Positions 12,341-64,000 of a stretch of 64,000 bases of DNA are shown here, piece after piece. The notes beneath the pieces are model-generated. The model searched no databases and was not told where the DNA came from. It was given only the letters and a program-made list of their open reading frames with translations. The position numbers and the translations under genes were made by a program. The DNA is from Pecten maximus (taxonomy: Eukaryota): contig NC_047024.1 in NCBI RefSeq assembly GCF_902652985.1, positions 17,794,001 through 17,858,000 on the forward strand, in the 5' to 3' direction. Every line of letters begins with the position of its first letter. Positions within the stretch are counted from its first letter, which is position 1.

Positions 12341-13345
12341 CGATTTTTGATAAGCAGTGAAAGATAGAATAGTTCAATATGTACAAATCTAATCTATAAT
12401 CAGACGGTACATTAGCGATCTGAAGTCTAAAAGGTCACTGTTGTAAATGTCTATAGATATATATACATACAAATGTATATGGTTTGTACTAAAATTAATG
12501 AATATAATTTTTACTATCTAGGCTGATCTTCGCCAATGGGCTGATACACGTAATTTATTTAGGCTTTGTTTGCCTAGCTCATACTGTTTACGCCCTGGGA
12601 ATCTGAGTGTGTGAAAGCTGGTTTCCGCGAAAATTACTTGTTTTATTTGTTAAAACAATTTTCTAAACATTGTTATTATGAAGTTATTCAATATTTTACG
12701 CATTCTTGAACACATATATATCGTCTAGCAGGCTGGAACGTTTTTACTACAAGTGGAAAATAATGACTTATTTCATTTTTTTCAGGAATCACGATGTTCT
12801 AGAGATAATCAACATGGGGATATAAAGATAGAGCAATAAATCTCGCCATGTAATGTTGTGCTGAAGCAACAAATCAGTATGGTGATTTAAGGAGAAAGTA
12901 AAGGAATTCACGGGACGTTGGACCTGGAGGAATTGCCACTTGCTAATTAATATGGCGTATTAAGGCGGCGTGGACCTAATGGACGTCAAGACAGGGAAAT
13001 GATTCGTTACAGTTGAATAGTGAATGCTGTGCATGCACTTCAACAAACATGGCTGAAAGTCACGTGTATGATATGCACGTGCGTTTCGGTCGCCGAGACG
13101 GAAAGGACCTAGATGTGGGCTAGGCAATATCTGCCCAATGCCCAAGGGCGATATGTCAACACCTGAAACGTATGATGGATGATCGCCCGAACAACATCGC
13201 ACGGATGCACCTGGCCTTGATGGGATCTGTACTCTCCTAGAAACGCCAATGGCATTTTTAAAGGAGACGAACATCCATGGAATGATCGGTTACGGAATCG
13301 AGTGGGAGGATGTGTGAAGGTGGGGATTGTGTCATCACCGTCAAA

Positions 13346-42007: not shown

Positions 42008-42559
42008 GGCAAAATAAAAAAAACATTATATTAAATGTGTATTAAGTATTTGTGTATACTTGTGAATACGAAACTGTTGTGACATTGATGAGTGATGATG
42101 CGTTTTATTAAGTATATACTGGAAAGTAATACTGGAAAGTACTTAATAAAGGCAATTACCCTAGAGAGAATATATTACATTCAATATATAATATAACCTT
42201 TGGGAGCAGCATTGACAGCATTTTGATACCTGTGTTTCTGTCTCGGGTGAAAAGAACTGTCTTGTGCAAGTCTATGATATAATTTAAGCTACGTAACACC
42301 ATGTTATTATTAACAACACCTTATACAATGACTTGATAACAATTACTGTAAAATTATTCGTGTGTATATAATGATTTTTTTATACTAATTACTTGAAATT
42401 GTGTTACAGTATATATGATGTCTTATTCTATACTAAACATGCTGACATATGTACAATTATAGACGTAGGGGTTTCTATGAAGAAGTCCGAAAAGCCTGTG
42501 ACGTATTTTTCTAATTCGGTACATCTCTGGCGTTTTCCGCGCGCCAATACCAATCGATC

Positions 42560-42621
42560 AAACATGTAGAAGCGTATTTTAGCGAACAAGTTTCAGCCTG
42601 CCGCGGTAAACAGTATAAATA
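42560..42621 (+). promoter_or_regulatory. Promoter of VWA gene copy A: p53-like element plus TATA box
   Basis: AAACATGTAG (42560), GAACAAGTTT-CAGCCTGCCG (42584-42603), TATAAATA (42614). Conserved in all four copies. CRE-like TGACGTA at ~42499. Confidence 0.6.
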
Positions 42622-43224
42622 GGGGTGCGAACAGACGACAGGCAGCAGTGTGTATTGGATCGGCGAGGTGAACACATTCACTGTACTGTACCTACGACTA
42701 CACACGTATACAGTGTAAAGCTATCGACTGGTTATAAACTACATATACCTAAGCTACCTTACTCTACGGTTATTAGAAAAGGTGATTTATGTAAACAAAT
42801 CTTAAAGGTTTTGAATAAGAATGTCAAACTTAATCAATACTATTTTATAGGAAGCGTAATTGATGTTAAAATTTAGCTAGTAAACCTCACAGCCTTTACC
42901 TTCATTTGCCCTAATAGTAACAGATCGTATATAGGGTTTAAAAAGAAAGTTCGCCTGAAGAGACTGTTTCATTTCATATACTACGTATGTAAGTAAAGGT
43001 GGTTTCAACGAAATAATTATAGGTTTTCATCAAAACAAAATTAAGAAATATTTCTATCATCTTTGTTCAAGTTTAGAAGTTTTTGTTGTATAGATGTAAA
43101 TATTACCAATCGTTAGACAATTATAACAATTCATGTATATTTATCTCTAGTATACCAATAAAGTAAAGTAATGGAGGAATAAGAATATAACGTTTTTATA
43201 AATATATTTTCAGATTTTATAATC

Positions 43225-45122
43225 ATGGCGGCACCACCCATGCTTCCACCTGGAGGACTCCTTGAAATCGTCTTCTCCTTTGATACTACCGGATCCATGT
43301 CCTCCATACTTGAGGAGGTCCAGGGAAGGCTACAGGACATGATACAGCGCCTCCAGGCGGATATTCCCGGCATCAGAATTGGTGTCATAGCCCATGGCGA
43401 TTACTGTGACGAAAAAGTCTTCTACTTGACCAAAGAACTTGACCTATGTACAAACGTTGTAGAACTTTGTAACTTCGTGAAGGGTGTGGAAGGAACTGGT
43501 GGTGGAGATGAAGATGAATGTTATGAATTAATTCTCCGAATGGTTCGACAAAATTTCACATGGACGCCAGCATCACAGAAAATCCTGGTCATGATTGGAG
43601 ACGCCAAACCCCATGAACCTGAATATGAACTGAATGTTGATAACATTGACTGGAGAGCAGAAGTCACGGATCTTCACAATATGGTAAGTAATGGAACCAT
43701 AACTGATCAATAACCTGTATGATTCAGAAATAATTATACATTTATCATATCAATATGAATCTCTAAAGGACTAAGTTCATTCCTGTAAAATCAATAATGA
43801 CAATTCTTTTTTCAGGGTGTGAAAATATATGGTGTCCAGGTGTTTGATCACCAAGGCGTTGAGGACTTCTACAAGACGATTTCCACAAACACAGAAGGAC
43901 ATTACCTCAAGCTGAACGAATTTTCCAATATCTGTGACTTCCTCATGGCTATCTGTTATCGGGAGAGGGGCGAGGACCTTTTTTCTGTAAGTATCAAACA
44001 CTGCCAAAAATCATGCAAATGTTTACCTGGAATATGAACTGAATTGATAAACATTATGCATTGTTCTTATCTTTCAGTTAGATAAAGCTTAAACATAGTA
44101 AAGACAAATATCAATAATTTCTAATTTGTCTATTACAGGGCTACGAAGCCGAAGTCCGAGGTCGATATGGGTCAGGTGGTATTAACAGAGACCTAGAGGG
44201 ATTATTTGGAACTCTGAGGAAGACCGATTCAAGTACAAGTGGCATTCACCCAGCCCCGTCACTTATTTCACCAATGTCATCTACAACAACGACTGTTACA
44301 ATGCCAACACCAAAGGTGACTCCTAATAGGCCAAGGGTGAATCCCAAGCGAAGGAACGTCACTGCCAGCAATATAAAGGTAACGACTGGTTTTTAGAGGC
44401 TTTATATTTTAAACAAAATTTTAAAATCCAAATATCGAACCAAAATTTGAATAATAATCACTGTAAATAAATTCCTTCGGCACTGCTCCAAGATTAAATT
44501 TCTTCTCTTGATATTAACTTGTTTTAGCTAGTGGGAATGCAACATCAACTAATAATTATATATTAAAATTTTCCAGAACAAATTCAAGAAAAGTGGTGAT
44601 GATGCTGATATGATTCCAAGAGAGAAAACAACGAATAAAGCCTTCACGTGCAACTGTCTAGATTGGACGTCATGGAGACTGGCGTATATTCCAACAGACG
44701 TGAATGAAGAAAAGACAAAACGTGGATTCAGGCGGAACTTCAGGGGAGCATGTCATAGGCGTGTTCAACTTTTCAGAGACAATTGCAAATCAGCCCTCTA
44801 TGAGGTAGCAGTACAAACAAAGGCACGTGGAAAACGCCACGTGATGTTCTCCAAGGTCATTTCCGGTACTATTGACAATCGTGAATGGGAATACAATCTT
44901 CTGTTTGGAGCGAAACAACGACTTCGCAGACAAATAAAAAGTGTTGTCGAACAGGGCTGCAAAGTGTTTGTAAGAAGGGCAGTCCTGAGTAAGAAATCTC
45001 TTGCTGAAGTGGACACTTTGAACAAATATAGTTACGCATGGAACCTCCAGAAATATACTCGTCAACACAGACGTGTCGTGAGAGACTATGTCGTCATTTC
45101 CGGTGAATGTATGGAGGAATAA
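43225..45122 (+). CDS. VWA domain + S/T/P/basic linker + ET-like (GIY-YIG-fold) domain protein, copy A, 471 aa; exons 43225-43683, 43816-43986, 44139-44378, 44577-45122
   Basis: Phase-0 GT-AG introns. VWA motifs IVFSFDTTGSM, IRIGVIAHGDYCD, TGGGDEDECYE, LVMIGDAKPH, GVKIYGVQ, FYKTIS..TEGHYL. C-terminal WTSW...ALYEVAV...HVMFSK...GCKVFVRRA...AE...KYSYAWN. No signal peptide. Confidence 0.9.
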
Positions 45123-47580
45123 ATTGGAGATTTGTGACACTGATAACTTAAGTGATGAAATAGGAAATATATGAACAGTATGTGATATCCAAGTAAATTG
45201 CCATTTCATTCCCTTGCCATTTCATGTTAAATACATATTTGTTATATATGTGCCATATGTATATATTTATCGTATTACTTTTTACCTATCTTGTTATTGT
45301 TTTGGTTGAAATAAAAATTATTAATGATTTATCTTTGTCGTCGTATATCAATGATGTCAAATGGTAAACAGATGATTATCGTCTGACAATATCAAGTAAT
45401 AAAATTCAAACTCCATTAAGAATATGTATTTCAATGTAGTAACATTATCCGTGTTGTAAAAAAACATATAAACTTGTGGTGGGAAGAAATATGAAAACAA
45501 GCGAAAATAATACCACCAACCAGCGTAATATGAATAATAGGGTAAGAAGTTCTTGGATGATAAATATCGCTTTAGATCTAACATTTTGGTGTTTTCCAGT
45601 TGTATATGGGTGTATATCTAAACGATCAGTATATACATATGTACATGTAATATCAAATATATACATGTGATTATTGACTGAACTCTCGTCACATGCACGT
45701 TAGTTTACAGGGGTCGATAAAGCATTATAAAAGAAAATTTGATCAGTTCAATTTCTCTGATTATATATGATATGTTTATGTCGAAAAATGAACAAAACTC
45801 ATCTTACAAACCTTATTAAGATACGATGATAATGAACAGATAAATTGATAGCGATACATGTATCGGTGGTAATCGTCTTATAGCGCATTTGGACTGAAAT
45901 ATTTTTGCTAATTTATTTGAGTATGCTTATTCATCATTTCGTTGACCAGTTTAAATTCAGCTATACGTTTAACATCTAGTGGACCAAAATGTAAAACGCT
46001 GACAGTAGTTTAGAATATAATAATTGAGAATATAAAAACAAAATTAGAAAATAGTAAATAATATTCTTCATACTATACCACAATTTGAACTAGGAATCGA
46101 TAACCAGTACAATGGGTATGAATGTGACTTTAAGGCAAAAGTTAAAATAGCATGAATGAGAAGAAATAAATAAACAAATAATGAAAAAACAACAGTTAAA
46201 TATCAGAGGTGACACGAGGATATCTGCTAAGGTCAAACGAACTACACTGCGTGGATGTGATAAAAAGTATAAACCTAACATTGCAAGTAGGCATCGGGAT
46301 GTTAACACAATAGGAATGATATTGTTGAAAAAAGAAATAATGAAACAAAGAGCCCGCTGTACAATACGCTATAACACATGGATTTGCTTGTGTTCCATTA
46401 CCTTGTGGTTTAATGACCAACTAAGTTATTTATGAATAACCATCACATATTGATTTGATATTTTTGAAAATAAACTTTAAATTCTATTAACCACGATCAC
46501 TATATACAATTATCATCTGATATGGTATATACAGAAACGGCTTCATCGTTTTTAAAAAGCTAATTATCATGTTCATTTAATACTTTTGTTATATTATAGA
46601 ATTATAGAGTTTATCCATTGTCGTTCAGAAATAAGCTATTCAATGATTAGAAAGATTTGCTTATCAAAATATTGTCTCACAATCAAATAAAAACAAAAGC
46701 ATATACATATTACGTGTAACTCGTTATCCAAATGATACTAGGACCCTTACATCAACAACAGCCACAAATGCATTATCTATTGATACGAGTACTTATAATA
46801 TTTTCGCATTACTTAATCGGGAGATTCGGCAAACTAAGTACAATGCTTATAATAATACATATATTGATTAAATCATAACAAAAATGAATAATTTAAAGGA
46901 GGATGTGACATTGTGGAAATGTGTATATACTGAACTTATAATAGCAAATATTATATACAAACTCCCGGGAACGATGTTAATAGAAGCAAGAACTGAGGTA
47001 GCATATTTTACCATACTATTTATCACCAAAAGTCAGACACGTATTATTGTAAAAAAACCTTACTTGTGTTACATGAAAGATCGTGCGTATGTCAACAGAG
47101 ATTACATGTATATGGAAAACACGTGCTGACATACAAAACAATGTGTAACATTCGATCGAAATTGTTTTAATAGAATCGAGAGGTCATATGTATACACGAC
47201 TAAGAATTTGACCAGATTGATGATCTATATAATCCCTGTTGTGTATTTTGCTCTGTCTAACGATTTATAATGTAGAACAGCACACTTATACAATGAAGAA
47301 ACACAATTCCAGTATCGCATCAACATTGTGATGAATGAATGCTATACTTTTGTTGAGAATTATCAAGGATATGACTTCTAATGAGCTTTTGTCTTCATTA
47401 ATATATATATATATATATATATATACGGTCCGCCGAGGCCTTTCATATTTTAACTATGCTGGCCTATGCATATTTATAGACACGGGGCTTAATTCTACAA
47501 AAAAGTCCGAATACGCTGTGACGCGATTTCTAACTCGATACACCTCTGCTTTTTCCCAATGAAGTGGTATCGATCGGTAC

Positions 47581-47642
47581 AAACATGTAGTGGCGTATTT
47601 TAGAGAACATGTCTCAGCCTGCCGCGGGAAACAGTATAAATA
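47581..47642 (+). promoter_or_regulatory. Promoter of copy B: p53-like element plus TATA box
   Basis: AAACATGTAG (47581), GAACATGTCT-CAGCCTGCCG (47605-47624), TATAAATA (47635). Confidence 0.6.
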
Positions 47643-48109
47643 GGGCTGCGAGCAGACGACAGGCAGCAGTGTGTATTGGATCGGCGAGGTGAACACATAC
47701 ACTGTACTATACCTACGACTACACACTTACATGTGTATATAGGGTAAAGCTATCAACTGGTAAACTACATATACCTGATCTACCTTACACTGCGGATATT
47801 AGAAAGAGGTGATTAATGAAAGCAAATCTTAATCATTACTATTTCTAGTTGTTGTTGATATCAGATCTAAAACCTCACAGTCTTAAGGGTATCTTCATTT
47901 TGTCCAATTGCAACAAATCTTGTATAGGGTTTAAAAAGAGCAGATACGTTCACCTTAAGAGACTGCTCAATTCCATCAAAACCTCAGACAATACTGTCAT
48001 AATGTATTGAATATAACAAATCTAGAAAATAATGTCATTATATATCAAAGTAGTATGTACGAATAAGTAAGTTAATTGATCTATAAATCTCCTTTCAGAT
48101 TTAATAATC

Positions 48110-50004
48110 ATGGCGGCACCACCCATGCTTCCACCTGGAGGACTCCTTGAAATCGTCTTCTCCTTTGATACTACCGGATCCATGTCTTCCATACTTGAGG
48201 AGGTCCAGGGAAGGCTACAGGACATGATACAGCGCCTCCAGGCGGACATTCCTGGCATAAGAATCGGTGTCATAGCCCATGGCGATTACTGTGACGAAAA
48301 AGTCTTCTACTTGACCAAGGAACTTGATCTCTGTACAGACGTTGTAGAACTTTGTAACTTCGTGAAGGGGGTGGAAGGAACTGGTGGCGGAGATGAAGAT
48401 GAATGTTATGAATTAATTCTCCGAATGGTCCGACAAAACTTCACATGGACACCAGCATCACAGAAAATCCTGGTCATGATTGGAGACGCCAAACCCCATG
48501 AACCTGAATATGAACTGAATGTTGATAACATTGACTGGAGAGCAGAAGTCACGGATCTTCACAATATGGTAAGTAATGGAACCATAACTGATCAATAACC
48601 TGTATGATTCAGAAATAATTATACATTTATCATATCAATATGAATCTCTAAAGGACTAAGTTCATTCCTGTAAAATCAATAATGACAATTCTTTTTTCAG
48701 GGTGTGAAAATATATGGTGTCCAGGTGTTTGATCACCAAGGCGTTGAGGACTTCTACAAGACGATTTCCACAAACACAGAAGGACATTACCTCAAGCTGA
48801 ACGAATTTTCCAATATCTGTGACTTCCTCATGGTTATCTGTTATCGGGAGAGGGGCGAGGATCTATTTTCTGTAAGTATCAAACACTGCCAAATCACTCA
48901 AATGTTTAACTGGAATATGAACTGAATAGATAAGCATTATGAATTTTTCTAATCTTTCAGTTAGATAAAGCTTAAACATACAAAAGACAATATCAATAAT
49001 TTCTAATTTGTCTATTACAGGGCTACGAAGCCGAGGTCCGAGGTCGGTATGGGTCAGGTGGTATTAACAGAGACCTAGAGGGATTATTTGGAACTCTGAG
49101 GAAGACCGATTCAAGTACAAGTGGCATTCACCCAGCCCCGTCACTTATTTCACCAATGTCATCTACAACAACGACTGTTACAATGCCAACACCAAAGGTG
49201 ACTCCTAATAGGCCAAGGGTGAATCCCAAGCGAAGGAACGTCACTGCCAGCAATATAAAGGTAACGACTGGTTTTTAGAGGCTTTATATTTTAAACAAAA
49301 TTTTAAAATCCAAATATCGAACCAAAATTTGAATAATAATCACTGTAAATAAATTCCTTCGGCACTGCTCCAAGATTAAATTTCTTTTCTTGATATTAAC
49401 TTGTTTTAGCTAGTGGGAATGCAACATCAACTAATAATTATATATTAAAATTTTCCAGAACAAATTCAAGAAAAGTGGTGATGATGCTGATATGATTCCA
49501 AGAGAGAAAACAACGAATAAAGCCTTCACGTGCAACTGTCTAGATTGGACGTCATGGAGACTGGCGTATATTCCAACAGACGTGAATGAAGAAAAGACAA
49601 AACGTGGATTCAGGCGGAACTTCAGGGGAGCATGCCATAGACGTGTTCAACTGTTTAGAGACAATTGCAAATCAGCCCTCTATGAGGTGGCAGTACAAAC
49701 AAAGGCACGTGGAAAACGCCACGTGATGTTCTCCAAGGTCATTTCCGGTACTAATGACAATTGTGAATGGGAATACAATCTTCTGTTTGGAGCGAAACAA
49801 CGACTTCGCAGACAAATAAAAAGTGTTGTCGAGCAGGGCTGCAAAGTGTTTGTAAGAAGGGCAGTCCTGAGTAAGAAATCCCTTGCTGAACTGGACACTT
49901 TGAACAAATATAGTTACGCATGGAATATTCAAAAAGACACTCGTCAACACAGACGTGTCGTGAGAGACTCTGTCGTCATTTCCGGTGAAAGTATGGAGGA
50001 ATAA
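48110..50004 (+). CDS. VWA + ET-like domain protein, copy B, 471 aa; exons 48110-48568, 48701-48871, 49021-49260, 49459-50004
   Basis: Same exon lengths (459/171/240/546) and splice sites as copy A; intact ORF. Confidence 0.9.
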
Positions 50005-51789
50005 GTTAAAGATTTGTGACACTGATAACTTAAGTGATGAAATAGGAAATATATGAACAGTATGTGATATCGAATTAAATTGCCATTGCATTCCTTGCCA
50101 TTCCATGTTAATTACATATTTGTTATATAAATGTGCCATATGTATATATTTTTCGTATTACTTTTTACCTATCTTGTTATTGTTTTGGTTGAAATAAAAA
50201 TTAATATTGACTTATCCTTGTCGTTGTATATCAGTGGTGTCAAATGGTCAACAGATGATTATCGTCTTATAATATCATGGAATAAAATTCAAACTGTATT
50301 CAGAAGATTTATTTCAATGTTGTAACGTTATCCGTAATGTAAACAAACATTAAACTTGTGGTGTGAGACATATGAAAACAAACGAAAATGAAACCACCAC
50401 TCAGCGTAATATGAATAATAGGGTGTGAAAATCTTGGATGACCAGCTGTAAATTCTGAAAGAGACATCTCTGTCATCGTGTTCAACTGAGAACGATGTTT
50501 TATATTGTAAAACAATCCAAGTTTGGTATTACCTTTCTGATTTATATAATGTGTGTACAAATAAAAAATCAAAGTAAAATAAGTTTTGAATGGTATTAAC
50601 AGACGCATGTAACGATCAAAACCGTGTGACTGCACTTTTAGTATGGACTTAGTAATAGACACAATAGATACATTAAACCTCGATACTGCAGTCTTCTAGA
50701 ATTTCTTATTTATTACAGGTGACAAAAATAATGGTAGTCCAGAAAACCCCGAAAAACAAAATAGGTATAATCAAATGCTCAATTATATCATAAGTAAATC
50801 TATTTGGTGCATTTTCTAAATTGCAGTTTCCATTTTTGGAATGCCATATAACTATCTACTATGTCATATGTAAACGATCCAAATAATCTACTTATATTAC
50901 ATCGCAGCTAGGGTTTACAAATGGCACGTGCTGTCCACATTGAATAAGGGTTGTCAGAAAGTGAATCAATATATAAATAACTTTATAAAATGAAATTCAG
51001 CTTCTGTAAATTCTTGGAAGACGAAATGCTTCACAATTTATAGGTACTCTGCTTATCGCTAAAAAGTATTCTCTAATGGACGTATTTAGAAAATCAATAT
51101 GAGACATACCATATACCGATGTGTATTAAAACGTTTAACAATAAATATCCAAAAGGGAGGGAACTTAAATATGTAGCTAGGTTTTTAGCTAGGTTTTTAC
51201 AAGATAAAAACCTATACTAAGTGATTTCACATGTTTCCTAAAATGATTTGATTTGTATATACATCGCGAGTGTAAATAAGATGACCTTGATGTACTGCAT
51301 GAATTAGTACGCATTCTCGTAGATTTTTTAAGTATGTTTTTTCCTCTGCTGTAAATACAGCATGCTAAAACAATTGAGTAAATTTTGTTCTAGTATAGCC
51401 ACTAATTTGTATAAGATATATATGGCAGAACAGTGTGCCTTATCTTCATCAGAGGGGCGTCACTTCAGGTTCTGTTTATTTTCTTTCATTTGTTTTCTGT
51501 CCGAAAGTGGTCTTAAAGTGCCAGGACGTTTTTTTTTACCCTTCTGCAAGGTTTGTATCCTATCCAGAAATATCAGTAACAGACTTCGGGTTTTTTGTAA
51601 CTAGTTCGGAAGAGTTTGTAACAGAAGCACTTTAGCTTAATTGTCCGGAAAAAACAAGGCTTATCTACCTTGAAGCGATTTTGAAATCCTTACCTGAAGC
51701 TTAATTCACTTCTACTATACCATTACATTCCTTAATTTCCTATTCCATTCTGTGCAATTAAACAAATAAACAACACTGTACTCTTTCAT

Positions 51790-52940
51790 AGATCCTATGA
51801 CTTTAGGTAACCAGAGTGTAGGTGGATATCGTAGATCCCATGACTTTATAGGTACAAATGTAACCAGAGTGTAGGTGGATATCGTAGATCCCATGACTTT
51901 ATAGGTACAAATGTAACCAGAGTGTAGGTAGATATCGTAGATCCTGTAACTTTATAGGTAACCGGAGTGTAGGTGGATATCGTGGATCCTATGACTTTAT
52001 AGGTAACCAGAGTGTAGGTGGATATCGTAGATCATGTGACTTTATAGGTAACCAGAGTGTAGGTGGATATCGTAGATCATGTGACTTTATAGGTAACTAG
52101 AGTGTAGGTGGATATCGTAGATCCTATGTCGTTATAGGTAACCAGAGTGTAGGTGGATATCGTAGATCCTATGACTTTATAGGTAACCAGAGTGTATGTG
52201 GATATCGTAGATTATGTGACTTTATAGGTAACCAGAGTGTAGGTGGATATCGTAGATCCTATTACATTATAGGTAACCAGAGTGTAGGTGGATATCGTAG
52301 ATCCTATAACTTTATAGGTAACCAGAGTTTAGACGGACATCGTAGATCCTATGACATTATAGGTAACCGGAGTGTAGGTGGATATCGTGGATCCTATGAC
52401 TTTATAGGTAACCAGAGTGTAGGTGGATATCGTAGATCCTATGACATTATAGGTTACCAAAGTGTAGGTGGATATCGTAGATCCTATGACTTTATAGGTA
52501 ACCAGAGTGTATGAGGATATCGTAGATCATGTGACTTTATAGATAACCAGAGTGTAGGTGGATATCGTAGATCCTATGACTTTATAGGTAGCCAGAGTGT
52601 AGGTGGATATCGTAGATCATGTGACTTTATAGGTAACCAGAGTGTAGGTGGATATCGTAGATCCTATGACGTTATAGGTAACCAGAGTGTAGGTGGATAT
52701 CGTAGATCCTATGACTTTATAGGTAACCAGAGTGTAGGTGGATATCGTAGATCCTATGACTTTATAGGTAACCAGAGTGTAGGTGGATATTGTAGTTCCT
52801 ATGTCATTATAGGTAACCAGAGTGTAGGTGGATATTGTAGTTCCTATGACTTTAGAGGTAACCAGAGTGTAGGTGGATATCATAGATCCTATGACTTTAT
52901 AGATAACCAGAGTTTAGGTGGATATCGTAGATCCTATGCT
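51790..52940. repeat. 45-bp minisatellite, about 25 copies
   Basis: Unit gatatcgtagatcctatgactttataggtaaccagagtgtaggtg, head to tail with no spacers. Confidence 0.95.
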
Positions 52941-52954
52941 TTTATGGAGGGTTA

Positions 52955-53475
52955 GTATAAGCAGTACACATTAAGTCATTGGCAGTAAGCAGTACGCAGT
53001 AAGCCCTTGACTATACGTAATACGCAATAACCCCTAAGCAGTAAACAGTAAGCAACGAGCCCTAGACTAAATGCAGTACACGATAAGTCTAGGAAATAAG
53101 CAGTACGCAGTAAGCCTTAAGCTATAAGCAGTACGCAGTATGCATTATGCTATGAGCAGTACGCATACAGCCCACAACTATTAGCATTACGCAATAACTC
53201 CTAGTACGTTTTTTCATAGATATTACTGTGTAAGCCTTAGACTATAAACAGTATGCAATCAGCCATACATATCACGCTGTAAGCTCTATAAGCAGTTCGC
53301 AGTTTTCCATAGATATCACGGTGTAAGACCTATAGCTATAAGCAGTATGCAGTCAGCCTTATACTATAAGCAGTAAATGTATACCTAGAAGTAAGTAGTA
53401 AGCAGTAAATCTATACTAAGAAGAACGCAGTAAGTAGTTGATTTATAGCTGCAAATTCGCAGTAAGCAGTAGATA
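52955..53475. repeat. Degenerate short tandem repeat (taagcagtacgcag motif)
   Basis: Recurring aagcagtacgcagtaagcc-like units. Confidence 0.7.
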
Positions 53476-53555
53476 TATTGCTGTCACTTATGGAATTCCA
53501 CTGCTGTAACATTTTCAGGCTATACATTTACCTCCCCATGGAAGAAAGAGAGACT

Positions 53556-55600
53556 TGAGAGATGTATTGTTATTGGGTACATCTGTTCTCCACACTTTAG
53601 AGATGCATTGTTATCGGGTACATCTGTTCTCCACACTTTGGAGATGTGTTGTTATTGGGTACATCTGTTCTCGGTACTTTAGAGATGTATTGTTATTGGG
53701 TACATCTGTTCTCCACACTTTATAGATGTGTTGTTATTGTGTACATCTGTTCTCCACACTTTAGAGATGTGTTGTTTTTGGGTATATCTGTTCCCCACAC
53801 TTTAGAGATGTATTGTTATTGTGTATATCTGTTTCCCACACTTTAGAGTTGTATTGTTATTGGGTATATCTGTTCCCCACACTTAAGAGATGTCTCGTTA
53901 TTGGGAACTTCTGTTCATATCTGTTCTCCACACTTTAGAGATGTCTCGTTATTGTGTATATCTGTCCTTCACACTTTAGAGATGTCTCGTTATTGGATAT
54001 ATCTGTTCCTCACACTTTAGAGATGTATTGTTATTGGGTACATCTGTTCTCCACACTTTAGAGATGTATTGTTATTGGGTATCTGTTCTCCACACTTTAG
54101 AGTTGTATTGTTATTGTGTATATCTGTTCCCCACACTTTAGAGATGTATTGTTATTGTGTACATCTGTTCTCCACACTTTAGAGATGTATTGTTATTGGG
54201 TACATCTGTTCTCCACACGTTAGAGATGTATTGTTATTGGGTACATCTGTTCTCCACACTTTAGAGATGTGTTGTTATTGGGTACATCTGTCCTCGGTAC
54301 TTTAGAGATGTATTGTTATTGGGTACATCTGTTCTCTACACTTTAGAGATGTATTGTTATTGTGTACATCTGTTCTCCACACTTTATAGATGTATTGTTA
54401 TTGTGTACATCTGTTCTCCACACTTTATAGATGTGTTGTTATTGTGTACATCTGTTCTCCACACTTGAGAGATGTGTTGTTATTGGGTACATCTGTTCTC
54501 CACACTTTATAGATGTATTGTTATTGGGTATATCTGTTCCCCACACTTTAGAGATGTATTGTTATTGGATAAATCTGTTCTCCACACTTGAGAGATGTAT
54601 TGTTATTGGGTATATATGTTCCCCACACTTTAGAGATGTATTGTTATTGGGTATATATGTTCTCCACACTTTGGAGATGTCTTGTTATTGTGTATATCTG
54701 TTCTCCACACTTTAGAGATGTATTATTATTGGGTATATCTGTTCTTCACACTTTAGAGATGTATTGTTATTGGGTATATCTGTTCATATCTGTTCTCCAC
54801 ACTTTAGAGATGTATTGTTATTGGGTATATCTGTTCGTATCTGTTCTCCACACTTTAGAGATGTCTCGTTATTGTGTATATCTGTCCTTCACACTTTAGA
54901 GATGTCTTGTTATTGTGTATATCTGTCCTTAACACTTTAGAGATGTCTTGTTATTGGGTATATCTGTCCTTCACACTTTAGAGATGTCTCGTTATTGGGT
55001 ATATCTGTTCTCCACACTTTAGAGATGTATTATTATTGGGTATATCTGTCCTTCACACTTTAGAGATGTCTCGTTATTGTGTATATCTGTCCTTCACACT
55101 TTAGAGATGTCTTGTTATTGTGTATATCTGTTCCTCACACTTTAGAGATGTATTGTTATTGGGTATATCTGTTCGTATCTGTTCTCCACACTTTAGAGAT
55201 GTCTCGTTATTGTGTATATCTGTCCTTCACACTTTAGAGATGTCTTGTTATTGTGTATATCTGTCCTTCACACTTTACAAAGGTATTGTTATCGGGTATA
55301 TCTGTTCTCCACACTTTAGAGTTGTATTGTAATTGGGTATATCTGTTCTCCACACTTTAGAGATGTATTGTTATTGGGTATATCTGTTCCCCACACTTTA
55401 GAAAGGTATTGTTATCGGGTAGATCTGTTCTCGACACTTTAGAGATGTCTTGTTATTGAACATATCTGTTCTCTACACTTTAGAGATGCGTTGATATTGG
55501 ATATATCTGTTCTCAATACTTTAGAGATGGATAGATTTTGTTCCATACATTTTAGAGATGTAATGCTGTTGGTTAAGTCTATTCTCCATACTTTAGAGTT
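53556..55600. repeat. 41-bp minisatellite, about 50 copies
   Basis: Unit gagatgtattgttattgggtacatctgttctccacacttta, head to tail, decaying at the right end. Confidence 0.95.
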
Positions 55601-56092
55601 GCATTCGTTCATTGCTTATATCACATCACTTGGTATGATTTGAATAGTTCATTATTTTTATTTAATTTTTGTAGCGTTTGTTATTGATATTGAAATGAAG
55701 TTAACACTTTTAATTTACGTATTGATTTTCATTAGATATAACAGTGTATATGATGAAAAACAGGTTATAAAATTCGCATTTAATATCATACTTTTTTTTA
55801 CATACGAAGGAGATACTGTTACTTTTAGTCACTCATTCCATACTGACTATGTTTTTCTTTTTATGACTCATTTGACAATATCAGTTAAATAACAACAATA
55901 CTGCCAACGATATATCAAATGGCTTTATTTAAAACCAAACAATTAACATACAAAATAAAAAATAATATAATTTAAAACTAATGTGACTTGGCAAGATATG
56001 ACAATTTAGTTCAATGTCATTTTAGCACCTCAATATTATGTTAATGAGTTCATAACACATTGAAATTATGTCTTTAATCGGATGATAAAAGT

Positions 56093-57992
56093 TTATTCCT
56101 CCATACATTCACCGGAAATGACGACATAGTCTCTCACGACACGTCTGTGTTGACGAGTGTCTTTTTGAAGGTTCCATGCGTAACTATATTTGTCCAAAGT
56201 GTCTACTTCAGCAAAAGATTTCTTATTCAAGATTGCCCTTCTCACAAACACTTTGCAGCCCTGTTCGATAATGCTTTTTATTTGTCTGCGAAGTCGTTGT
56301 TTCGCTCCAAACAGAAGATTGTATTCCCATTCACGATTGTCAATAGTACCGGAAATGACCTTGGAGAACATCACGTGGCGTTTTCCACGTGCCTTTGTTT
56401 GTACTACTACCTCATAGAGGGCTGATTTACAATTGTCTCTGAATAGTTGGACACGTCTATGACATGCTCCCCTGAAGTTCCGCGTGAATCCACGTTTTGT
56501 CTTTTCTTCATTCACGTCTGTTGGAATGTACGCCAGTCGCCATGACGACCAATTTAAACAGTTGCACGTGAAGGCTTTATTCGTTGTTTTCTCTCTTGGA
56601 ATCATATCAGCATCATCACCATTGCTCTTGAGTTTATTCTGGAAAAATGAAATAGATAATTATTAGTTGATGTTGAATTCACAGCAGCTTAAACAAATTA
56701 ATATCAAGAAAAGAAATTTAATCTTAGATCATTGCCGAAGGAATTTATTTACAGTGATTAGTATTCAAATCTTTTTTTAATATTTGGAATTTAAAATTTT
56801 GTTTAAAATGTAAAGCCTCTAAAAACCAGTCGTTACCTTTATATTGCTGACAGTGACGTTCCTTCGCTTGGGATTCACCCTTGGCCTAATAGGAGTCACC
56901 TTTGGTATTGGCATTGTAACAGTCGTTGTTGTAGATGACATTGGTGAAATAAGTGGCGGGGCTGGGTGAATGTCACTTGTACCAGAATCGGCCTTCCTCA
57001 GAGTTCCAAATAATCCCTCTAGGTCTCTGTTAATACCACCTGACCCATATCGACCTCGGACCTCGGCTTCGTAGCCCTGTAATAGACAAATTGGAAATTA
57101 TTGATATTTGTCTGAACGAAGCTTTAATTTTATCTAAATGATAGATAACAAATAATTTATTGTATACTAATCCATTTTATATGCCAGTTAAACTTTTATG
57201 TGTTTTTGGCAGTGTTTGATACTTACAGAAAATAGATCCTCGCCCCTCTCCCGATAACAAATAGCCATGAGGAAGTCACAGATGTTGGAAAATTCGCTCA
57301 GCTTGAGGTAATGTCCTTCTGTGTTTGTGGAAATCGTCTTGTAGAAGTCCTCAACATCTTGGTGATCAAACACCTGGACACCATATATTTTCACACCCTG
57401 AAAAATAAAGATTGATATTGTTGATTATACAGGAATTAACTCAGTGCTCTTTAGAGATAAATATTGATATTATAATGGTATAATTATTTCTGAATAATAC
57501 AGGTTATTGATAAGTTATGGTTCCATTACTTACCATATTGTGAAGATCATTGACTTCTGCTCTCCAGTCAATGTTATCAACATTCAGTTCATATTCAGGT
57601 TCATGGGGTTTGGCGTCTCCAATCATGACCAGGATTTTCTGTGATGCTGGTGTCCATGTGAAATTTTGTCGGACCATTCGGAGAATTAATTCATAACATT
57701 CATCTTCATCTCCGCCACCAGTTCCTTCCACACCCTTCACGAAGTTACAAAGTTCTACAACGTTTGTACAGAGGTCAAGTTCCTTGGTCAAGTAGAAGAC
57801 TTTGTCGTCACAGTAATCGCCATGGGCTATGACACCAATTCTGATGCCGGGAATATCAGCCTGGAGGCGCTGTATCATGTCCTGTAGCCTTCCCTGGACC
57901 TCCTCAAGTATGGAGGACATGGATCCGGTAGTATCAAAGGAGAAGACGATTTCAAGGAGTCCTCCAGGTGGAAGCATGGGTGGTGCCGCCAT
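56093..57992 (-). CDS. VWA + ET-like domain protein, copy C, 471 aa; exons 57992-57534, 57397-57227, 57076-56837, 56638-56093
   Basis: Same exon lengths and splice sites as copy A; intact ORF. Promoter with GAACAAGTTT (58531-58522) and a TATA box. Confidence 0.9.
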
Positions 57993-60900
57993 GATTATTA
58001 AATCTGAAAGGAGATTTATAGTTCAATTAAATTACTTATTCGTACATACTACTTTGATATAAAATGACATTATTTTTTAGATTTGTTATATTCAATACTT
58101 TATGACAGTATTGTCTGAGCTCCTGATGGAAAGGAGCAGTATCTTAAGGTGAACATATTTGTTCTTTTTAAACACTGTATAAGATTTGTTGTAATTGGGC
58201 AAAATAAAGATACCTTAGAAGTTATGGTAAAGACTGTGGGGTTTACAGCTAATATTAACAACGCTACCTAGAAATAGTAATGATTAAGTTACGTTCTCTA
58301 ATTGAAAGCCTATAAGATTTGTTTATATTAATCACCTTTTTCTAATAACCTAAGAGTAAGGTAGCTTAGGTATATGTAGTTTACCAGTTGATAGCTTTAC
58401 ACTGTATAAGTGTGTAGTCGTAGGTATCGTACAGTGTATGTGTTCACCTCGCCGATCCAATACACACTGCTGCCTGTCGTCTGCTCGCAGCCCTATTTAT
58501 ACTGTTTACTGCGGCAGGCTGAAACTTGTTCGCTAAAAATACGCTACTACATGTTTGATAACGAACACCACTTCATTGGAAATTATCAGAGGAGTATCGA
58601 GTTAGAAATCGCGTCAGAGTGTATTCGGACTTTTTCGTAGAATTAAGCCTTGCGTCTACAACTATGCATGAGTCAGCACAGTTAGAATATGAAAGGCCTC
58701 AGTGGACCGCCGTATATATATTTATGAAGACCATGCCTCTTTAAAAGTATTATCCTTGATAATTTTCAATAAACGTATAATATTCATTTCATCATAATGT
58801 TCATGCGACACTGGAATTGTATTAACTCATTATATAAATGTGATACGCTACAGTATATATATCGATAGACAGAACGAAAACACAACAAGGATTATATAAA
58901 TTATCAATTTAGTCAAATTCTCAGTCATGTATATATATGATATCTCGATTCTATTAAAAAAATGATCGAATGTTACACATTGTTCTGTATGTAAGCACGT
59001 GTGTGTTCATTTCCATATACATGTAGTCTTTATTGACTTACGCACGATCTGCTATGTAACATAAATACGTTATATTACAATAATATATGTCAGACTTTCG
59101 GTGATACATAGTATGGTAAAATATGTTACCTCAGTTCTTGCTTCTATTAACATTGATTCCTAGAGTTGATATATAATATTTGGTATTATAAGTTCAGTAT
59201 ATATACATTTCTACAATGTCACATCCTCCTTTAAATTACCCGTTTTCGTAATGATTTAATCAATATATGTATTATCATAAGCATTGTATTTAGTGTGCCG
59301 AATCTCCGGATTAAGTAATGCGAAAATATTATAAGTACTCGTATCAATAGATAATGTATTTGTGGCTGCTGTTGATGTAAGGGTCCTATTATCAGTTGGA
59401 TAACGAGTTACACGCAATATACATGCACCCAGATGTAATATTGTTCATGATTAACCAAGATTTTTTCGAAAAAAAAAATTCATTTGTTTGACTTTTGTTT
59501 TTATTTGATTGTGAGAGAATATTTTAATTAGATATTTCCGATCCTTGAATAGCTTATTTCTGAACACCATTGGATAAAACACTTTCATTATTTGAATCTA
59601 CAAAATATTGTACTTTGAGTTACGTTATGATGTGCTGTGTTTTATCAACAGTATTAATGAACTTGACAATAAGGTTTTGAAACGACGAAGCCGTTTCTAT
59701 ATATACCATATCAGATGGTAATTGTATATAGTGATCGTAATATAGAATTATAAGTTTATTCTTATGTTCTTCCTGGTCATTTCATTTCAATTTATTTATT
59801 TATTTTTTTCAAAAATATTAAATCACTATGTGTTGGTTCCTCATATAAAGGTAGTTTGTCGTTAAACCACAAAGTACATGGAACCCAAGCAAGTCAACGT
59901 AGTATACCGTATTATGCAGTGGGTTATTTTTCCATTTTATTTATTTATATTGTGTTAACACCCAGTTGCCTATTTTCAATGTTAGGTTTATATTTGTATT
60001 ACTTCCACTCTTTGTGATTCGTTTGACCTTAGCAGATATCCTCGTTTCGCCTCTGATGTTTAACTGTTGTTTTTTCATTATTTGTTTATTTCCCGTTCAT
60101 GCTATTTTACCTTCTGTCTTGAAGTCACATGCATACCCATTGTACTGGTTATCGATTCCTAGTTCAAATTGTGACATTGTATGAGGAATGATACATACTA
60201 TTTCTAATATTTGTTTTTATATTCTCAATGATTTCATTCCAAACTACTGTCAGTGGTTTATATTTTGGTCCACTGGACTTTTAGCGTATAGCTGAATTTA
60301 AACTGGTCAACGAAATGATGAATTAGCATATCCACAATATTTTCGTAGATAATATTGTAATATTTCTTCTGCAATTTGCGATTAGCACTAGTATAAATTA
60401 GCAAAAATATTTCAGTCCAAATGCGCTAAAAAAACTATTACGACTGCTATATGTATCGCTATCAATTAATCCGCTCATTATCAACATATCTTAATAACGT
60501 TTGTAAGATGAGTTTTGTTCATTTTTCGACATAAACATGTCTATATAATCAGAGAAATTGAATTGATCAAATTTTCTTCAATAATGCGTTATCGACTCCT
60601 GTAAACTAAAGTGCATGTCAGGAGAGTTCAGTCAATAATTACATGTATGTGTTTGATATTACATGTACATATGTATATATACTGATCGTTTATATATACA
60701 TCCATATACAACTGCAAAACATCAAAATGTTAGATCTAAAGCGATATTTATCATCCAGGAACTTCTTACCCTATTATTCATATTACGTTGAGTGTTGGTT
60801 TTATTTTCGTTTGTTTTCATATTTCTTCACACCACAAGTTTAATGTTTTCTTGCATTACGGATAATGTTACTATATTGAAATACATTTTCTGAATACAGT

Positions 60901-61190
60901 TTGAATTTTATTCCTTGATATTATAAGACGATGGTCATCTGTTAACCATTTGACCATTGATATACCACGACAAAGATAAATCAATATTAATGTTTATTTC
61001 AAACACAACAATAACAAGATAGGTAAAGAGTAATACGAACAATACATACATATGACACATTTATATAACAAATACAAAATACAAATGAAAGGGCAATCAA
61101 ATTAATGAAATGGCAATTTACTTCGATATCACATGCTGTTCATATATTTCTTATTTCATCACTTAAGTATGAGTGTCACAAATCTTAAAT

Positions 61191-63096
61191 TCATTCCTCC
61201 ATACATTCACCGGAAATAACTAAAAAGTCTCTCACGACACGTCTGTGTTGACGAGTGTCTTTTTGAAGGTTCCATGCGTAACTATATTTGTCCAAAGTGT
61301 CCACTTCAGCAAGGGATTTCTTACTCAGGACTGCCCTTCTTACAAATACTTTGCAGCCTTGTTCGACAACACTTTTTATTTGTCTGCGAAGTCGTTGTTT
61401 CGCTCCAAACAGAAGATTGTATTCCCATTCACGATTGTCAATAGTACTGGAAATGACCTTGGAGAACATCACGTGGCGTTTTCCACGTGCCTTTGTTTGT
61501 ACTGCTACCTCATAGAGGGCTGATTTGTAATTGTCTCTGAATAATTGGACACGCCTATGGCATGCTCCCTTGAAGTTCCGCCTGAATCCACGTTTTGTCT
61601 TTTCTTCATTCACGTCTGTTGGAATGTACGCCAGTCGCCATGACGACCAATTTAAACAGTTGCACGTGAAGGCTTTATTCGTTGTTTTCTCTCTCGGAAT
61701 CATATCAGCATCATCACCATTGTTCTTGAGTTTGTTCTGGAAAAAAATAAATAGATAGTTATTAGTTGATATTGCATTCACAGCAGCTTAAACAAGTTAA
61801 TATCAAGAGAAGAAATTTAATCTTTAAGCATTGGCGAAGGAATTTATTTACAGTGATTAGTATTCAAATTTTGGTTTGATATTTGGAATTTTAGATTTTG
61901 TTTAAAATGTAAAGCCTCTAAAAACCAGTCGAGTCGTTACCTTAATATTGCTGACAGTGGCGTTCCTTCGCTTAGGATTCATCCTTGGCCTCATAGGAGT
62001 CACCTTTGGTGTTGGCATTATAACAGTCGTTGTTGTAGATGACATTGGTGAAATAAGTGGCGGGGCTGGGTGAATGTCACTTGTACCAGAATCGGCCTTC
62101 CTCAGAGTTCCAAATAATCCCTCTAGGTCTCTGTTAATACCACCTGACCCATATCGACCTCGGACCTCGGCTTCGTAGCCCTGTAATAGACAAATTAGAA
62201 ATTATTGATATTTGTCTTAACGATGCTTTAATTTTATCTAAATGATAGATAACAAATCATTTATTGTATACTAATCCATTTTATATGCCAGTTAAACTTT
62301 TATGTGTTTTTGGCAGTGTTTGATACTTACAGAAAATAGATCTTCGCCCCTCTCCCGATAACAGATAGCCATGAGGAAGTCACAGATGTTGGAAAATTCG
62401 CTCAGTTTGAGAAAATGTCCTTCTGTGTTTGTGGAAATCGTCTTGTAGAAGTCCTCAACATCTTGGTGTTCAAACACCTGGACACCATATATTTTCACAC
62501 CCTGAAAAATAAAGATTGACATTGTTGATTATACAGGAACTAACTCAGTCCTCTTAAGAGATTCATATTGATATTATAAAAGTATAGTTATGTCTGATTA
62601 ATACGGCTTATCGATCATTTATGGTTCCATTACTTACCATATTGTGAAGATCATTGACTTCTGCTCTCCAGTCAATGTTATCAACATTCAGTTCATATTC
62701 AGGTTCATGGGGTTTGGCGTCTCCAATCATGACCAGGATTTTCTGTGATGTTGGTGTCCATGAGAAATTTTGTCGGACCATTCGGAGAATTAATTCATAA
62801 CATTCGTCTTCATCTCCGCCACCAGTTCCTTCCACACCCTTCACGAAGTTACAAAGTTCTACAACGTTTGTACAGAGGTCAAGTTCCTTGGTCAAGTAGA
62901 AGACTTTGTCGTCACAGTAATCGCCATGGGCTATGACACCAATTCTGATGCCGGGAATATCCGCCTGGAGGTGCTGAATCATGTCCTGTAGCCTTCCCTG
63001 TACCTCCTCAAGTATGGAGGACATGGATCCAGTAGTATCAAAGGAGAAGACGATTTCAAGGAGTCCTCCAGGGGGAAGGATGGGTGGTGCCGCCAT
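61191..63096 (-). CDS. VWA + ET-like domain protein, copy D, 471 aa; exons 63096-62638, 62501-62331, 62180-61941, 61736-61191
   Basis: Same exon lengths and splice sites as copy A; intact ORF. Promoter with GAACAAGTCT (63727-63718) and a TATA box. Confidence 0.9.
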
Positions 63097-64000
63097 GATT
63101 ATTAAATCTGAAAGGAGATTTATAGAACAGTTATAGTATGTGCTCCTCCATTACTTTATTTAAATGGTATACTGTAGATAAATATAAGTGAAGTGTGCTA
63201 ACGATTGGTAATATTTACGTCTATACAATGAAAACTTCTAAACTTGCATGAAGATAATAGAAATATTACTGAATTTTGTTTTGTTGAAAACCTATAATTA
63301 TTTCGTTGAAATCACCTTAACCTTAACTTTACGTAGTAGGCCTATATGAAATGAAACAGTCTCTTAAGGCGAACTTTCTTTATAATCCTTACATACGATT
63401 TGTTACTATCAGGGCAAATGAAGGTAAATGCTGTGAGGTTTACTAGCTAAATTTTAACACCAATTACGCTTCCCATAAAATAGTAATGATTAAGTTTGAC
63501 ATTCTTATTCAAAACCTTTAAGATTTGTTTACATTAATCACCTTTTCTAATAACCGTAGAGTAGCTAGGTATATGTAGTTTATAACCAGTCGATACACTG
63601 TATACGTGTGTAGTCGTAGGTATAGTACAGTGAATGTGTTCACCTTGCTGATCCAATACACACTGCTGCCTGTCGTCTGCTCGCAGCCCTATTTATACTG
63701 TTTCACGCGGCAGGATGAGACTTGTTCGCTAAAATACGCTTCTACATGTTTGATCGATTGGTATTGGCGCGCGGAAAAAGGCAAAGATGTACCGAATTAG
63801 AAAAATACGTCACAGGCTTTTCGGACTTCTTTATAGAAACCCTCACATCTATAATTATACATATGTCAGCATGTTTAGTATAGAATAAGACAGTATATAG
63901 ACTGTAGCACTATTTCAAGTAATTCGTTTAAAAAATCATTACATACACACGTATAATTTAACAGTAATTATTATTGTATATAGTCATTGTGTAAGGTGTT

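Follow-up and report, generated by a model that had tools for sequence, protein, structure and literature searches.

Four paralogous genes, here called g1 to g4, were analysed in a 64,000-nucleotide stretch of Pecten maximus DNA (contig NC_047024.1, positions 17,794,001 to 17,858,000 of the forward strand; hereafter the window). Their 471-residue products combine an N-terminal VWA domain, a basic linker and a C-terminal domain (C-domain) which very probably has the GIY-YIG fold and whose closest structural match is endonuclease II (EndoII) of phage T4. The function that we favour, if with modest confidence, is that of a soluble intracellular adaptor: the VWA domain would dock on a partner, and the basic, GIY-YIG-derived C-domain would engage nucleic acid, cleavage being at best non-canonical. 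Coordinates given below are those of the window, and exon numbers refer to coding exons unless stated otherwise. The genes and the parts of g1 are located as follows:

43225-45122, + strand: g1 coding region, 471 codons (exons 43225-43683, 43816-43986, 44139-44378 and 44577-45122), from open reading frames, splice sites and RNA contigs.
48110-50004, + strand: g2 coding region (exons 48110-48568, 48701-48871, 49021-49260 and 49459-50004), from exon mapping.
56093-57992, - strand: g3 coding region (exons 57534-57992, 57227-57397, 56837-57076 and 56093-56638), from exon mapping.
61191-63096, - strand: g4 coding region (exons 62638-63096, 62331-62501, 61941-62180 and 61191-61736), from exon mapping.
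42661-42781, + strand: g1 non-coding first exon, from a transcriptome contig, 5' end approximate.
43225-43986, + strand: g1 VWA domain (exons 1-2), matching Pfam VWA_4 and VWA, with the residues D20, T22, S24 and the IGD aspartate of a metal ion-dependent adhesion site (MIDAS).
44139-44378, + strand: g1 linker exon, 80 amino acids, basic and S/T/P-rich, predicted to be disordered past the first ~25 residues.
44577-45122, + strand: g1 C-domain, 181 amino acids, consisting of a W..W extension and a predicted GIY-YIG-fold core (residues ~72-156, 44790-45044).

The quartet was delimited from the open reading frames (ORFs) listed between 43 and 64 kb and by exon mapping from g1. Two copies lie on each strand, and each copy comprises coding exons of 459, 171, 240 and 546 nt (153, 57, 80 and 181 codons) which are separated by phase 0 introns with GT..AG borders; internal stops are absent from all four. 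RNA runs were compared as assembled contigs, which show presence and splicing, not expression level. Spliced transcripts were present in contigs of four runs from four studies, all joints being GT..AG, and each of the three g1 coding joints (43683>43816, 43986>44139 and 44378>44577) was found in contigs of three to four runs from different studies. A contig of run X1 joined 42661-42779 to position 43212 and skipped 432 nt with GT..AG ends, i.e., an intron in the 5' untranslated region; with this exon taken as ~42661-42781 the join is to 43214, and the ATG of g1 is located 11 nt past the splice acceptor. Each gene consists of five exons, the first of which is non-coding, and is intact, spliced and transcribed. 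ORFs, splice sites and the lack of internal stops bear out a preliminary description of this DNA, made from sequence, that had proposed four intact 471-residue genes with identical exon structure, and its count of the terminal exon as exon 5 was correct, the RNA contigs having revealed the non-coding exon 1.

The C-domain is encoded by exon 4 (181 residues, isoelectric point (pI) 10.0, 39 K+R) and contains the motifs W30..W33, S72-ALYEVAV, H88-VMFSK, G127-CKVFVRRA, A143-E..L.KYSYAWN156 and R165-R166. A phmmer search with exon 4 against 1.84 billion representatives yielded 117 relatives. With a 46-sequence alignment of the C-domain (A2) as input, AlphaFold2 returned a model with a predicted local distance difference test score (pLDDT) of 86.3 and a predicted template modelling score (pTM) of 0.85. 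In this model, DSSP assigned strands to residues 72-80, 87-96 and 129-136 and helices to residues 101-110, 114-125 and 139-150, with extra strands preceding them. The resulting order β1-β2-α1-α2-β3-α3 is that of the GIY-YIG core, and it was repeated in an independent model of the homologue P0147.

When the PDB was searched with Foldseek, T4 EndoII ranked first (probability 0.80). VIA-align, a blind search of 48,161 PDB chains that is independent of Foldseek, placed GIY-YIG nucleases at ranks 1-4: (i) EndoII (Z 7.0 over 112 residues at 3.4 Å); (ii) Hpy188I (Z 4.3); (iii) the GIY-YIG N-domain of UvrC (Z 3.8); (iv) I-TevI (Z 3.3). PD-T4-3, Eco29kI and the N-domain of AtGRXS16 were also found within the top 14, and the top unrelated chain had a Z of 3.2. 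The preliminary description had predicted this fold and had named beforehand the lack of a structural match as grounds for abandoning it; of the comparisons that it proposed, UvrC and I-TevI were both among the top four, but EndoII, and neither of these two, was the closest. Among the predicted viral structures of BFVD, matches with E-values of 8.4e-6 and 4e-4 were followed by a phage 'Endonuclease II' (probability 0.96). The accessions of the top two BFVD matches are presumably associated with chloroviruses.

PF19239 (GIY_YIG_domain) was the only Pfam family matched by the C-domain in all four copies. The scores of g1 to g4 (20.0, 20.8, 20.9 and 21.2 bits) are all below the gathering cut-off of 21.4, and the match is partial, covering profile positions 105-157 or, in a second comparison, ~101-161 of 163, a segment equivalent to helix 2 and strand 3 plus the YAW motif. 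Thirty of the 117 relatives matched PF19239 at E<0.01 (best 1.2e-6), and P0183 (28.6 bits), P0163 (24.9 bits) and P0162 (23.0 bits) exceeded the cut-off; the window copies may thus be members of PF19239, but only transitively, via these relatives. An EndoII-family phage protein also matches PF19239, weakly. Because Pfam name, PDB ranks and predicted viral structures all point to one superfamily, we assign the C-domain to the GIY-YIG fold with high confidence; the case rests on all top matches belonging to that superfamily and not on the Z of 7.0. Together with the Pfam scores of the N-terminal domain given below, the structure searches bear out the fusion of a VWA to a GIY-YIG-fold domain.

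None of the 117 relatives matched the canonical GIY-YIG family PF01541 at E<0.01, with EndoII and I-TevI as controls scoring 28.7 and 66.8 bits. Searching the whole genome with PF19239 gave no match at genome-wide E-values; the controls were likewise silent. With hhalign, A2 reached non-significant probabilities of 0.5-1.1% against T4 EndoII, the N-domain of I-TevI and a seven-sequence EndoII alignment, and in the non-significant EndoII alignment the pairing of helix 2, of strand 3 and of the ..WN end agrees with the structures. Searches of PDB sequences with the C-domain, as a single sequence or as a profile, gave only chance matches (EF-hand, eL28, BamA). An EF-hand_11 match in Pfam (E 0.01) overlaps the strand region of the confident model and was dismissed as chance. 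The ESM Atlas score was at noise level (0.78) for both the whole C-domain and residues 60-181, a word-indexed protein search found no match for exon 4 alone and only two family members for A2, and scans with PHROGs, NCBIfam and PADLOC gave nothing relevant.

The N-terminal domain is a VWA domain with a complete MIDAS metal site, as judged from sequence. Exon 1 scored above the Pfam cut-offs of VWA_4 (29.0 bits; cut-off 27) and VWA (25.6 bits; cut-off 23.8). It contains the motifs DTTGSM (residues 20-25, exon-1 numbering), GDYCD, GGGDxxECYE and IGDAxPH, and all motifs quoted in the preliminary description were located in the VWA exon and the terminal exon. The MIDAS columns (DTTGS, GGGD..E loop and IGD aspartate) show little or no variation in 16 full-length relatives, and the first ~25 codons of exon 3 contribute conserved helices to the domain. 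The full-length fold was modelled with AlphaFold2 on the natural homologue P0147 (471 residues). In this model a VWA domain (residues 8-200) is followed by helices up to residue 227, a disordered segment (residues 230-303, pLDDT <50) and the C-domain (residues 305-466); with a pTM of 0.51, the model does not point to a fixed contact between the domains. The closest PDB structures of the P0147 VWA domain are integrin beta I domains (E ~1e-9, 12-16% identity), so that the former view of a bacterial or vwkA type rather than an integrin type is not supported, and the NCBIfam and PADLOC scans gave nothing relevant for a bacterial affinity of the VWA domain.

The three parts of the protein differ in charge, with pI values of 4.3 (VWA), 10.9 (linker) and 10.0 (C-domain). 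The 80-residue linker exon 3 consists of S, T or P to 35%, in agreement with the S/T/P-rich basic linker and very basic terminal exon described initially, and K+R amount to 25-29% in the linkers of three other full-length relatives measured. The stretch KRR..KFKK, which spans the linker and the start of exon 4, may represent a bipartite nuclear localization signal (NLS)-like element. As neither a signal peptide nor a transmembrane segment was found in the protein (maximum Kyte-Doolittle(19) value 1.14), it is classified as intracellular, as had been proposed.

Of 30 relatives looked up, 16 carry names, and these are all from molluscs (13 bivalve and gastropod species; genera Magallana, Mytilus, Mizuhopecten, Potamilus, Haliotis, Lottia, Lymnaea, Littorina, Batillaria and Gigantopelta), with no plant protein among them, and all are annotated as 'uncharacterized' or 'VWFA domain-containing'. 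Judged by these 16 named relatives, the gene family is mollusc-specific. No paper describing a VWA-linker-GIY-YIG architecture was found, including for the oyster, abalone and limpet accessions, and a GIY-YIG census of 2006 contains no VWA-linked family, in keeping with the preliminary statement that no characterised protein is known to have this architecture.

Within the P. maximus genome (918 Mb), every close VWA copy adjoins a C-domain copy, at ~10 loci on three chromosomes of which two or three look broken. Because of this invariable pairing, VWA and C-domain are regarded as an obligate unit in this genome and not as a promiscuous VWA with swappable effectors. Six further VWA plus C-domain paralogues have the same exon order and C-domains that are 27-56% identical to that of g1. 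The loci of further paralogues are:

C10:35.229-35.233 Mb: L001.
C10:42.218-42.226 Mb: L002.
C12:0.923-0.940 Mb: L003.
C7:45.911-45.921 Mb: L004.

Three segments look damaged: the C-domain at C12:937306-937837 contains a TAA and is split over two frames, and both the VWA at C10:42217913-42218345 and the C-domain at C10:42225679-42226184 are in two frames. In the same orthologues, identity to the window protein is 50-79% for the VWA domain and 25-39% for the C-domain. The rate of evolution is about twofold higher in the C-domain than in the VWA domain, and the family expands by local duplication. A long form of 674-834 residues (P0227, P0195, P0232 and P0211; Mizuhopecten, Mytilus and Potamilus) has ~190-300 extra N-terminal residues, for which no Pfam match was found. 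UniRef names the scallop long form after the mimivirus 'Ariadne-like RING finger protein R811', which hints at a giant-virus protein as its best Swiss-Prot match.

Selection on the four copies was estimated by Nei-Gojobori counts pooled per domain, exons 1 and 2 being merged for substitution counting. The ratio of non-synonymous to synonymous substitution rates (dN/dS) was 0.03-0.17 for the VWA exons and 0.16-0.29 for the terminal exon; the linker exon, with a ratio of ~1, is near-neutral. Given the low dN/dS, both folded domains are kept by purifying selection in all four copies. A pseudogene or an annotation artefact, which was considered as an explanation of the locus, is ruled out by the RNA contigs and dN/dS.

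The units compared (42315-45560, 47456-50441, 55660-58689 and 59492-64000) resemble each other in a mosaic manner. The g1 unit (43165-45560) and g2 share 95.3% DNA identity. In the flanks, g1 is closest to g4 and g2 to g3, which indicates that a tandem pair underwent inverted duplication. Gene bodies pair differently, g1 with g2 and g3 with g4, and their introns diverge by as little as 0-2%; this pairing with near-identical introns indicates later gene conversion between direct neighbours. Between g1 and g2, introns are 0-2% divergent while dS in exons is ~0.1. The palindrome centre, between the inward-facing gene pairs, is occupied by satellites at 51789-52942 and 53553-55529; one has a unit of 45 bp (~23 copies, with a period of 135 also scored) and the other a unit of 41 bp (~47 copies). 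Long ORFs in these satellites (e.g., 52617-52883 and 54431-54899) are repeat artefacts.

Upstream of the coding region, alignment of the four upstream regions delimited a promoter for g1:

42560-42621, + strand: g1 core promoter.

Its TATAAATA box (TATA) is located at 42614-42621, and each of the four copies has its own TATA-box promoter. Two candidate p53-type decamers, scored by eye against RRRCWWGYYY, lie 14 bp apart and ~20-55 bp upstream of the g1 box, at 42560-42569 (8/10) and 42584-42593 (10/10). The equivalent stretches upstream of g2 to g4 also contain the box and both decamers, and the perfect decamer differs in g2 by two substitutions, both within the consensus. According to the same alignment, the block ~42590-42780, which includes promoter and exon 1 of the transcript, is almost unchanged across all four copies.

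Catalytic residues were assessed by comparison with T4 denA and six aligned homologues. The residues invariant in these seven EndoII-family sequences are Y37, Y47, G49, K56, R57, Y61, E118 and N130. In EndoII, the exchange E118A abolishes catalysis, R57A is among the two least active mutants, and strict conservation is reported for G49 and R57 (PMC2764454). The Tyr of the GIY motif is kept in the mollusc family, as Y75 in all four copies and as Y in 36 of 42 relatives outside the window (F in five, L in one). At position 91, that of the YIG Tyr, all four copies have Phe (Y in 24 and F in 10 of the relatives), and position 93, that of the YIG Gly, is K or R in the mollusc family. For the helix-1 catalytic Arg (R57 in EndoII, R27 in I-TevI), no conserved Arg was found 10-12 residues past position 91: R occurs at position 102 in 12 of 42 relatives and in three of the four window copies, g2 having Cys there, and position 103 is S, N or T. 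Position 107 is R in 15 of 42 relatives and Asn in the window copies. The metal-binding Glu after strand 3 has no conserved column across the family; E144 occurs in the window copies only, none of 20 other sequences inspected having it, and K144 takes its place in the nearest paralogue. The canonical Asn is present in 16 of 88 relatives. Conserved instead are E76, R133 and W155, which are invariant in the mollusc family, and W30, W33, W104, Y153, A154 and R165, which are nearly so; R133, R134 and R165 are conserved in the C-domain.

Nuclease activity is doubtful, as the family lacks a conserved YIG Gly, catalytic Arg, metal-binding Glu and Asn and has other invariant residues instead. We conclude from these alignments that selection across the family does not maintain classical one-metal GIY-YIG catalysis. 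The term 'nuclease' used in the preliminary description is weakened by this loss of canonical residues and by the failure of all 117 relatives to match PF01541. In our view the main role of the C-domain is that of a nucleic-acid-binding or non-canonical module and not of a classical nuclease, its very basic nature (pI 10.0) suggesting that it still engages nucleic acid. Residual nicking activity is a candidate property of the window clade, where Y75, E144/N156 and, in three of the four copies, R102 might support it.

These observations can be combined into a model in which four functional paralogues of a mollusc-specific intracellular family are arranged at this locus as a tandem-plus-inverted array. 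Through its MIDAS metal site, the acidic, conserved VWA domain would dock on a conserved partner or oligomerise, and the basic, disordered linker would carry the NLS-like stretch. Docking would bring the basic, fast-evolving C-domain to nucleic acid, with the nucleus as the probable site, so that the protein would serve as a nuclear or cytoplasmic adaptor. Local duplication and fast C-domain evolution would be compatible with a function in genome defence or in the response to DNA damage. Several points weigh against such an adaptor. Nucleic-acid binding is deduced only from fold ancestry and charge, and the residues that are invariant in the family might make up a catalytic site of another kind, in which case 'mainly binding' would be wrong. 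In the window copies E144 and N156 are 12 residues apart, like E118 and N130 in EndoII, an equivalence given by spacing and the non-significant hhalign alignment. The fold itself is affected by the hhalign probability of 1.1% for A2 against the EndoII alignment, by the A2 profile finding nothing among PDB sequences, and by the VIA-align Z of 7.0, which taken alone sits in the 'common arrangement' range.

The alternative, in line with the preliminary description, is an active GIY-YIG nuclease or nickase that would be gated by a VWA sensor and serve as DNA-damage or antiviral effector; it would be an animal analogue of bacterial vWA-effector conflict proteins. We consider it unlikely, although it deserves serious attention, above all for the window clade with its Glu/Asn pair. 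The fold is closest to EndoII, an enzyme degrading foreign (host) DNA; window copies retain Y75 besides E144/N156, and hhalign pairs W155-N156 with W129-N130 of EndoII. The local amplification of the family, the fast-evolving C-domain and the conserved promoter with p53-type decamers would suit an effector, and bacterial MoxR-vWA proteins do bear C-terminal nuclease effectors (PMC8195603). What speaks against an active enzyme is the replacement of the YIG Gly by K/R and of the YIG Tyr by Phe in all four copies, the unconserved equivalent of R57/R27 with Cys at position 102 of g2, the restriction of E144 to the window copies (Lys in the nearest paralogue) and the rarity of the Asn (16 of 88 relatives), given the effects in EndoII of the exchanges E118A (catalysis abolished) and R57A (among the two least active mutants; PMC2764454). 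Nor does any relative match PF01541, and PADLOC finds nothing. An extension of this idea, which we regard as improbable, is that a captured EndoII- or giant-virus-type nuclease, possibly of viral origin, was fused to a VWA sensor and now has a ligand-switched, remodelled active site around the invariant or nearly invariant E76, R133, Y153 and R165, the product being a defence or DNA-damage effector.

If the family-wide loss of canonical catalytic residues is given full weight, the C-domain could also be a protein-binding or structural module without nucleic-acid function, and the protein a pure scaffold or adaptor. The invariant E76 and R133 and the conserved Trp/Tyr cluster could be purely structural, but a domain of pI 10 with 39 K+R in 181 residues, K/R-rich linkers in three relatives and the conservation of R133, R134 and R165 make this very improbable; moreover, the N-terminal extension aligns with the N-terminal region of EndoII, which has a part in DNA binding by that enzyme (K12; PMC2764454). 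Finally, the four copies might not be host genes but belong, as cargo, to a mobile element or an integrated virus, comparable to a homing-endonuclease-like selfish gene. Their number and the viral nature of the nearest profile and structure relatives (PF19239, BFVD proteins, phage EndoII) would agree with such an origin, which is nevertheless hardly credible for genes with a conserved four-exon structure and spliced mRNA, under purifying selection, and with orthologues across bivalves and gastropods that always have the same VWA partner. Transposase or reverse transcriptase ORFs are lacking between 43 and 64 kb, as are terminal repeats beyond the duplication itself, and no close viral relative was found in IMG/VR.

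Whichever function applies, MIDAS VWA, basic linker and EndoII-like GIY-YIG fold make up an undescribed animal domain architecture that is multi-copy and transcribed and extends over bivalves and gastropods. If the C-domain cuts or binds nucleic acid under VWA control, the proteins would represent a new effector type in invertebrate genome defence or DNA-damage signalling, with a bearing on bivalve antiviral biology, and a further GIY-YIG fold recruited into a regulatory protein, as in the plant EFFECTOR OF TRANSCRIPTION (ET) proteins. If the C-domain is inactive, it would be a clean example of a nuclease fold exapted with new invariant residues. In either case the database annotation as 'uncharacterized' or 'VWFA domain-containing' is corrected.

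Two other ORFs in the window are mentioned here as separate observations. The single-exon ORF at 13310-14047 (+ strand; 245 residues) encodes an aminoacyl-tRNA editing domain (PF04073, E 2.6e-18) of the YbaK/ProX-like trans-editing type. The 169-residue ORF at 25632-26141 (- strand) is composed of ~5 tandem copies of a ~27-residue unit (MTMTVGVISRHPPSYDNDCWSPQDTCP) and is probably a minisatellite rather than a gene, to judge by its repeats.

When compared to known systems, the VWA domain finds its best profile match in Pfam VWA_4 (hemicentin-1-like VWA) and its best structural match in integrin beta I-like domains, with which it shares a MIDAS signature of the type D-x-[ST]-x-S-M. It differs from the integrin domains in its low identity to them (12-16%), in being intracellular and in lacking the hybrid and PSI context. 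The arrangement on one polypeptide, with a MIDAS VWA at the N-terminus, an effector domain at the C-terminus and a linker between them, is shared with Dictyostelium vwkA, other intracellular VWA-plus-effector proteins and the bacterial MoxR-vWA ternary conflict systems, the latter having C-terminal nuclease effectors on the vWA protein (PMC8195603). Unlike these, the mollusc proteins have no alpha-kinase or AAA+ domain by Pfam, no MoxR partner and no evidence of a vWA-L linker, and their VWA subtype never occurs with another C-terminal domain in the P. maximus genome.

Plant ET1, ET2 and HRT resemble the mollusc family in having a GIY-YIG-type domain inside a non-repair regulatory protein. Similar motifs (YE..V, VVY and YDYAWN) may be shared with the ETs, in line with the preliminary description, and the C-domain may be related to them. 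The ETs have been described as specific to plants, and no computed match connects them with the mollusc family. They carry C-terminal Cys-rich zinc/DNA-binding ET repeats and no VWA, whereas the mollusc proteins have a VWA and no ET repeats and end 25 residues past YAWN, with no further domain by Pfam or in sequence. The domain of ET2 has been reported to nick DNA and to resemble UvrC (PMC6585611).

PF19239, the only Pfam family matched by the mollusc C-domain, is listed among Pfam families curated from clusters of nucleocytoplasmic large DNA viruses (cluster_858; PMC8715426, Table S2). No viral member with a VWA is known, and a scan of IMG/VR with a single C-domain protein gave no close viral relative. 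T4 EndoII (DenA, a GIY-YIG nuclease; PDB 2wsh) is the best structural match of the C-domain, N-terminal extension included. EndoII is a stand-alone phage enzyme of 136 residues, whereas the mollusc domain forms the C-terminus of a VWA protein. G49, K56, R57 and Y61, which are invariant in the EndoII family, have no conserved counterpart in the mollusc family, which in turn has E76, R133, W30 and W33 as invariant or nearly invariant residues of its own. Both have Trp-Asn at the end of the core (W129-N130 in EndoII, W155-N156 in the C-domain), and in both EndoII and the window copies a Glu precedes this Asn by 12 residues. On present sequence matches and models, viral and phage GIY-YIG domains appear to be the closest demonstrable relatives of the mollusc C-domain.

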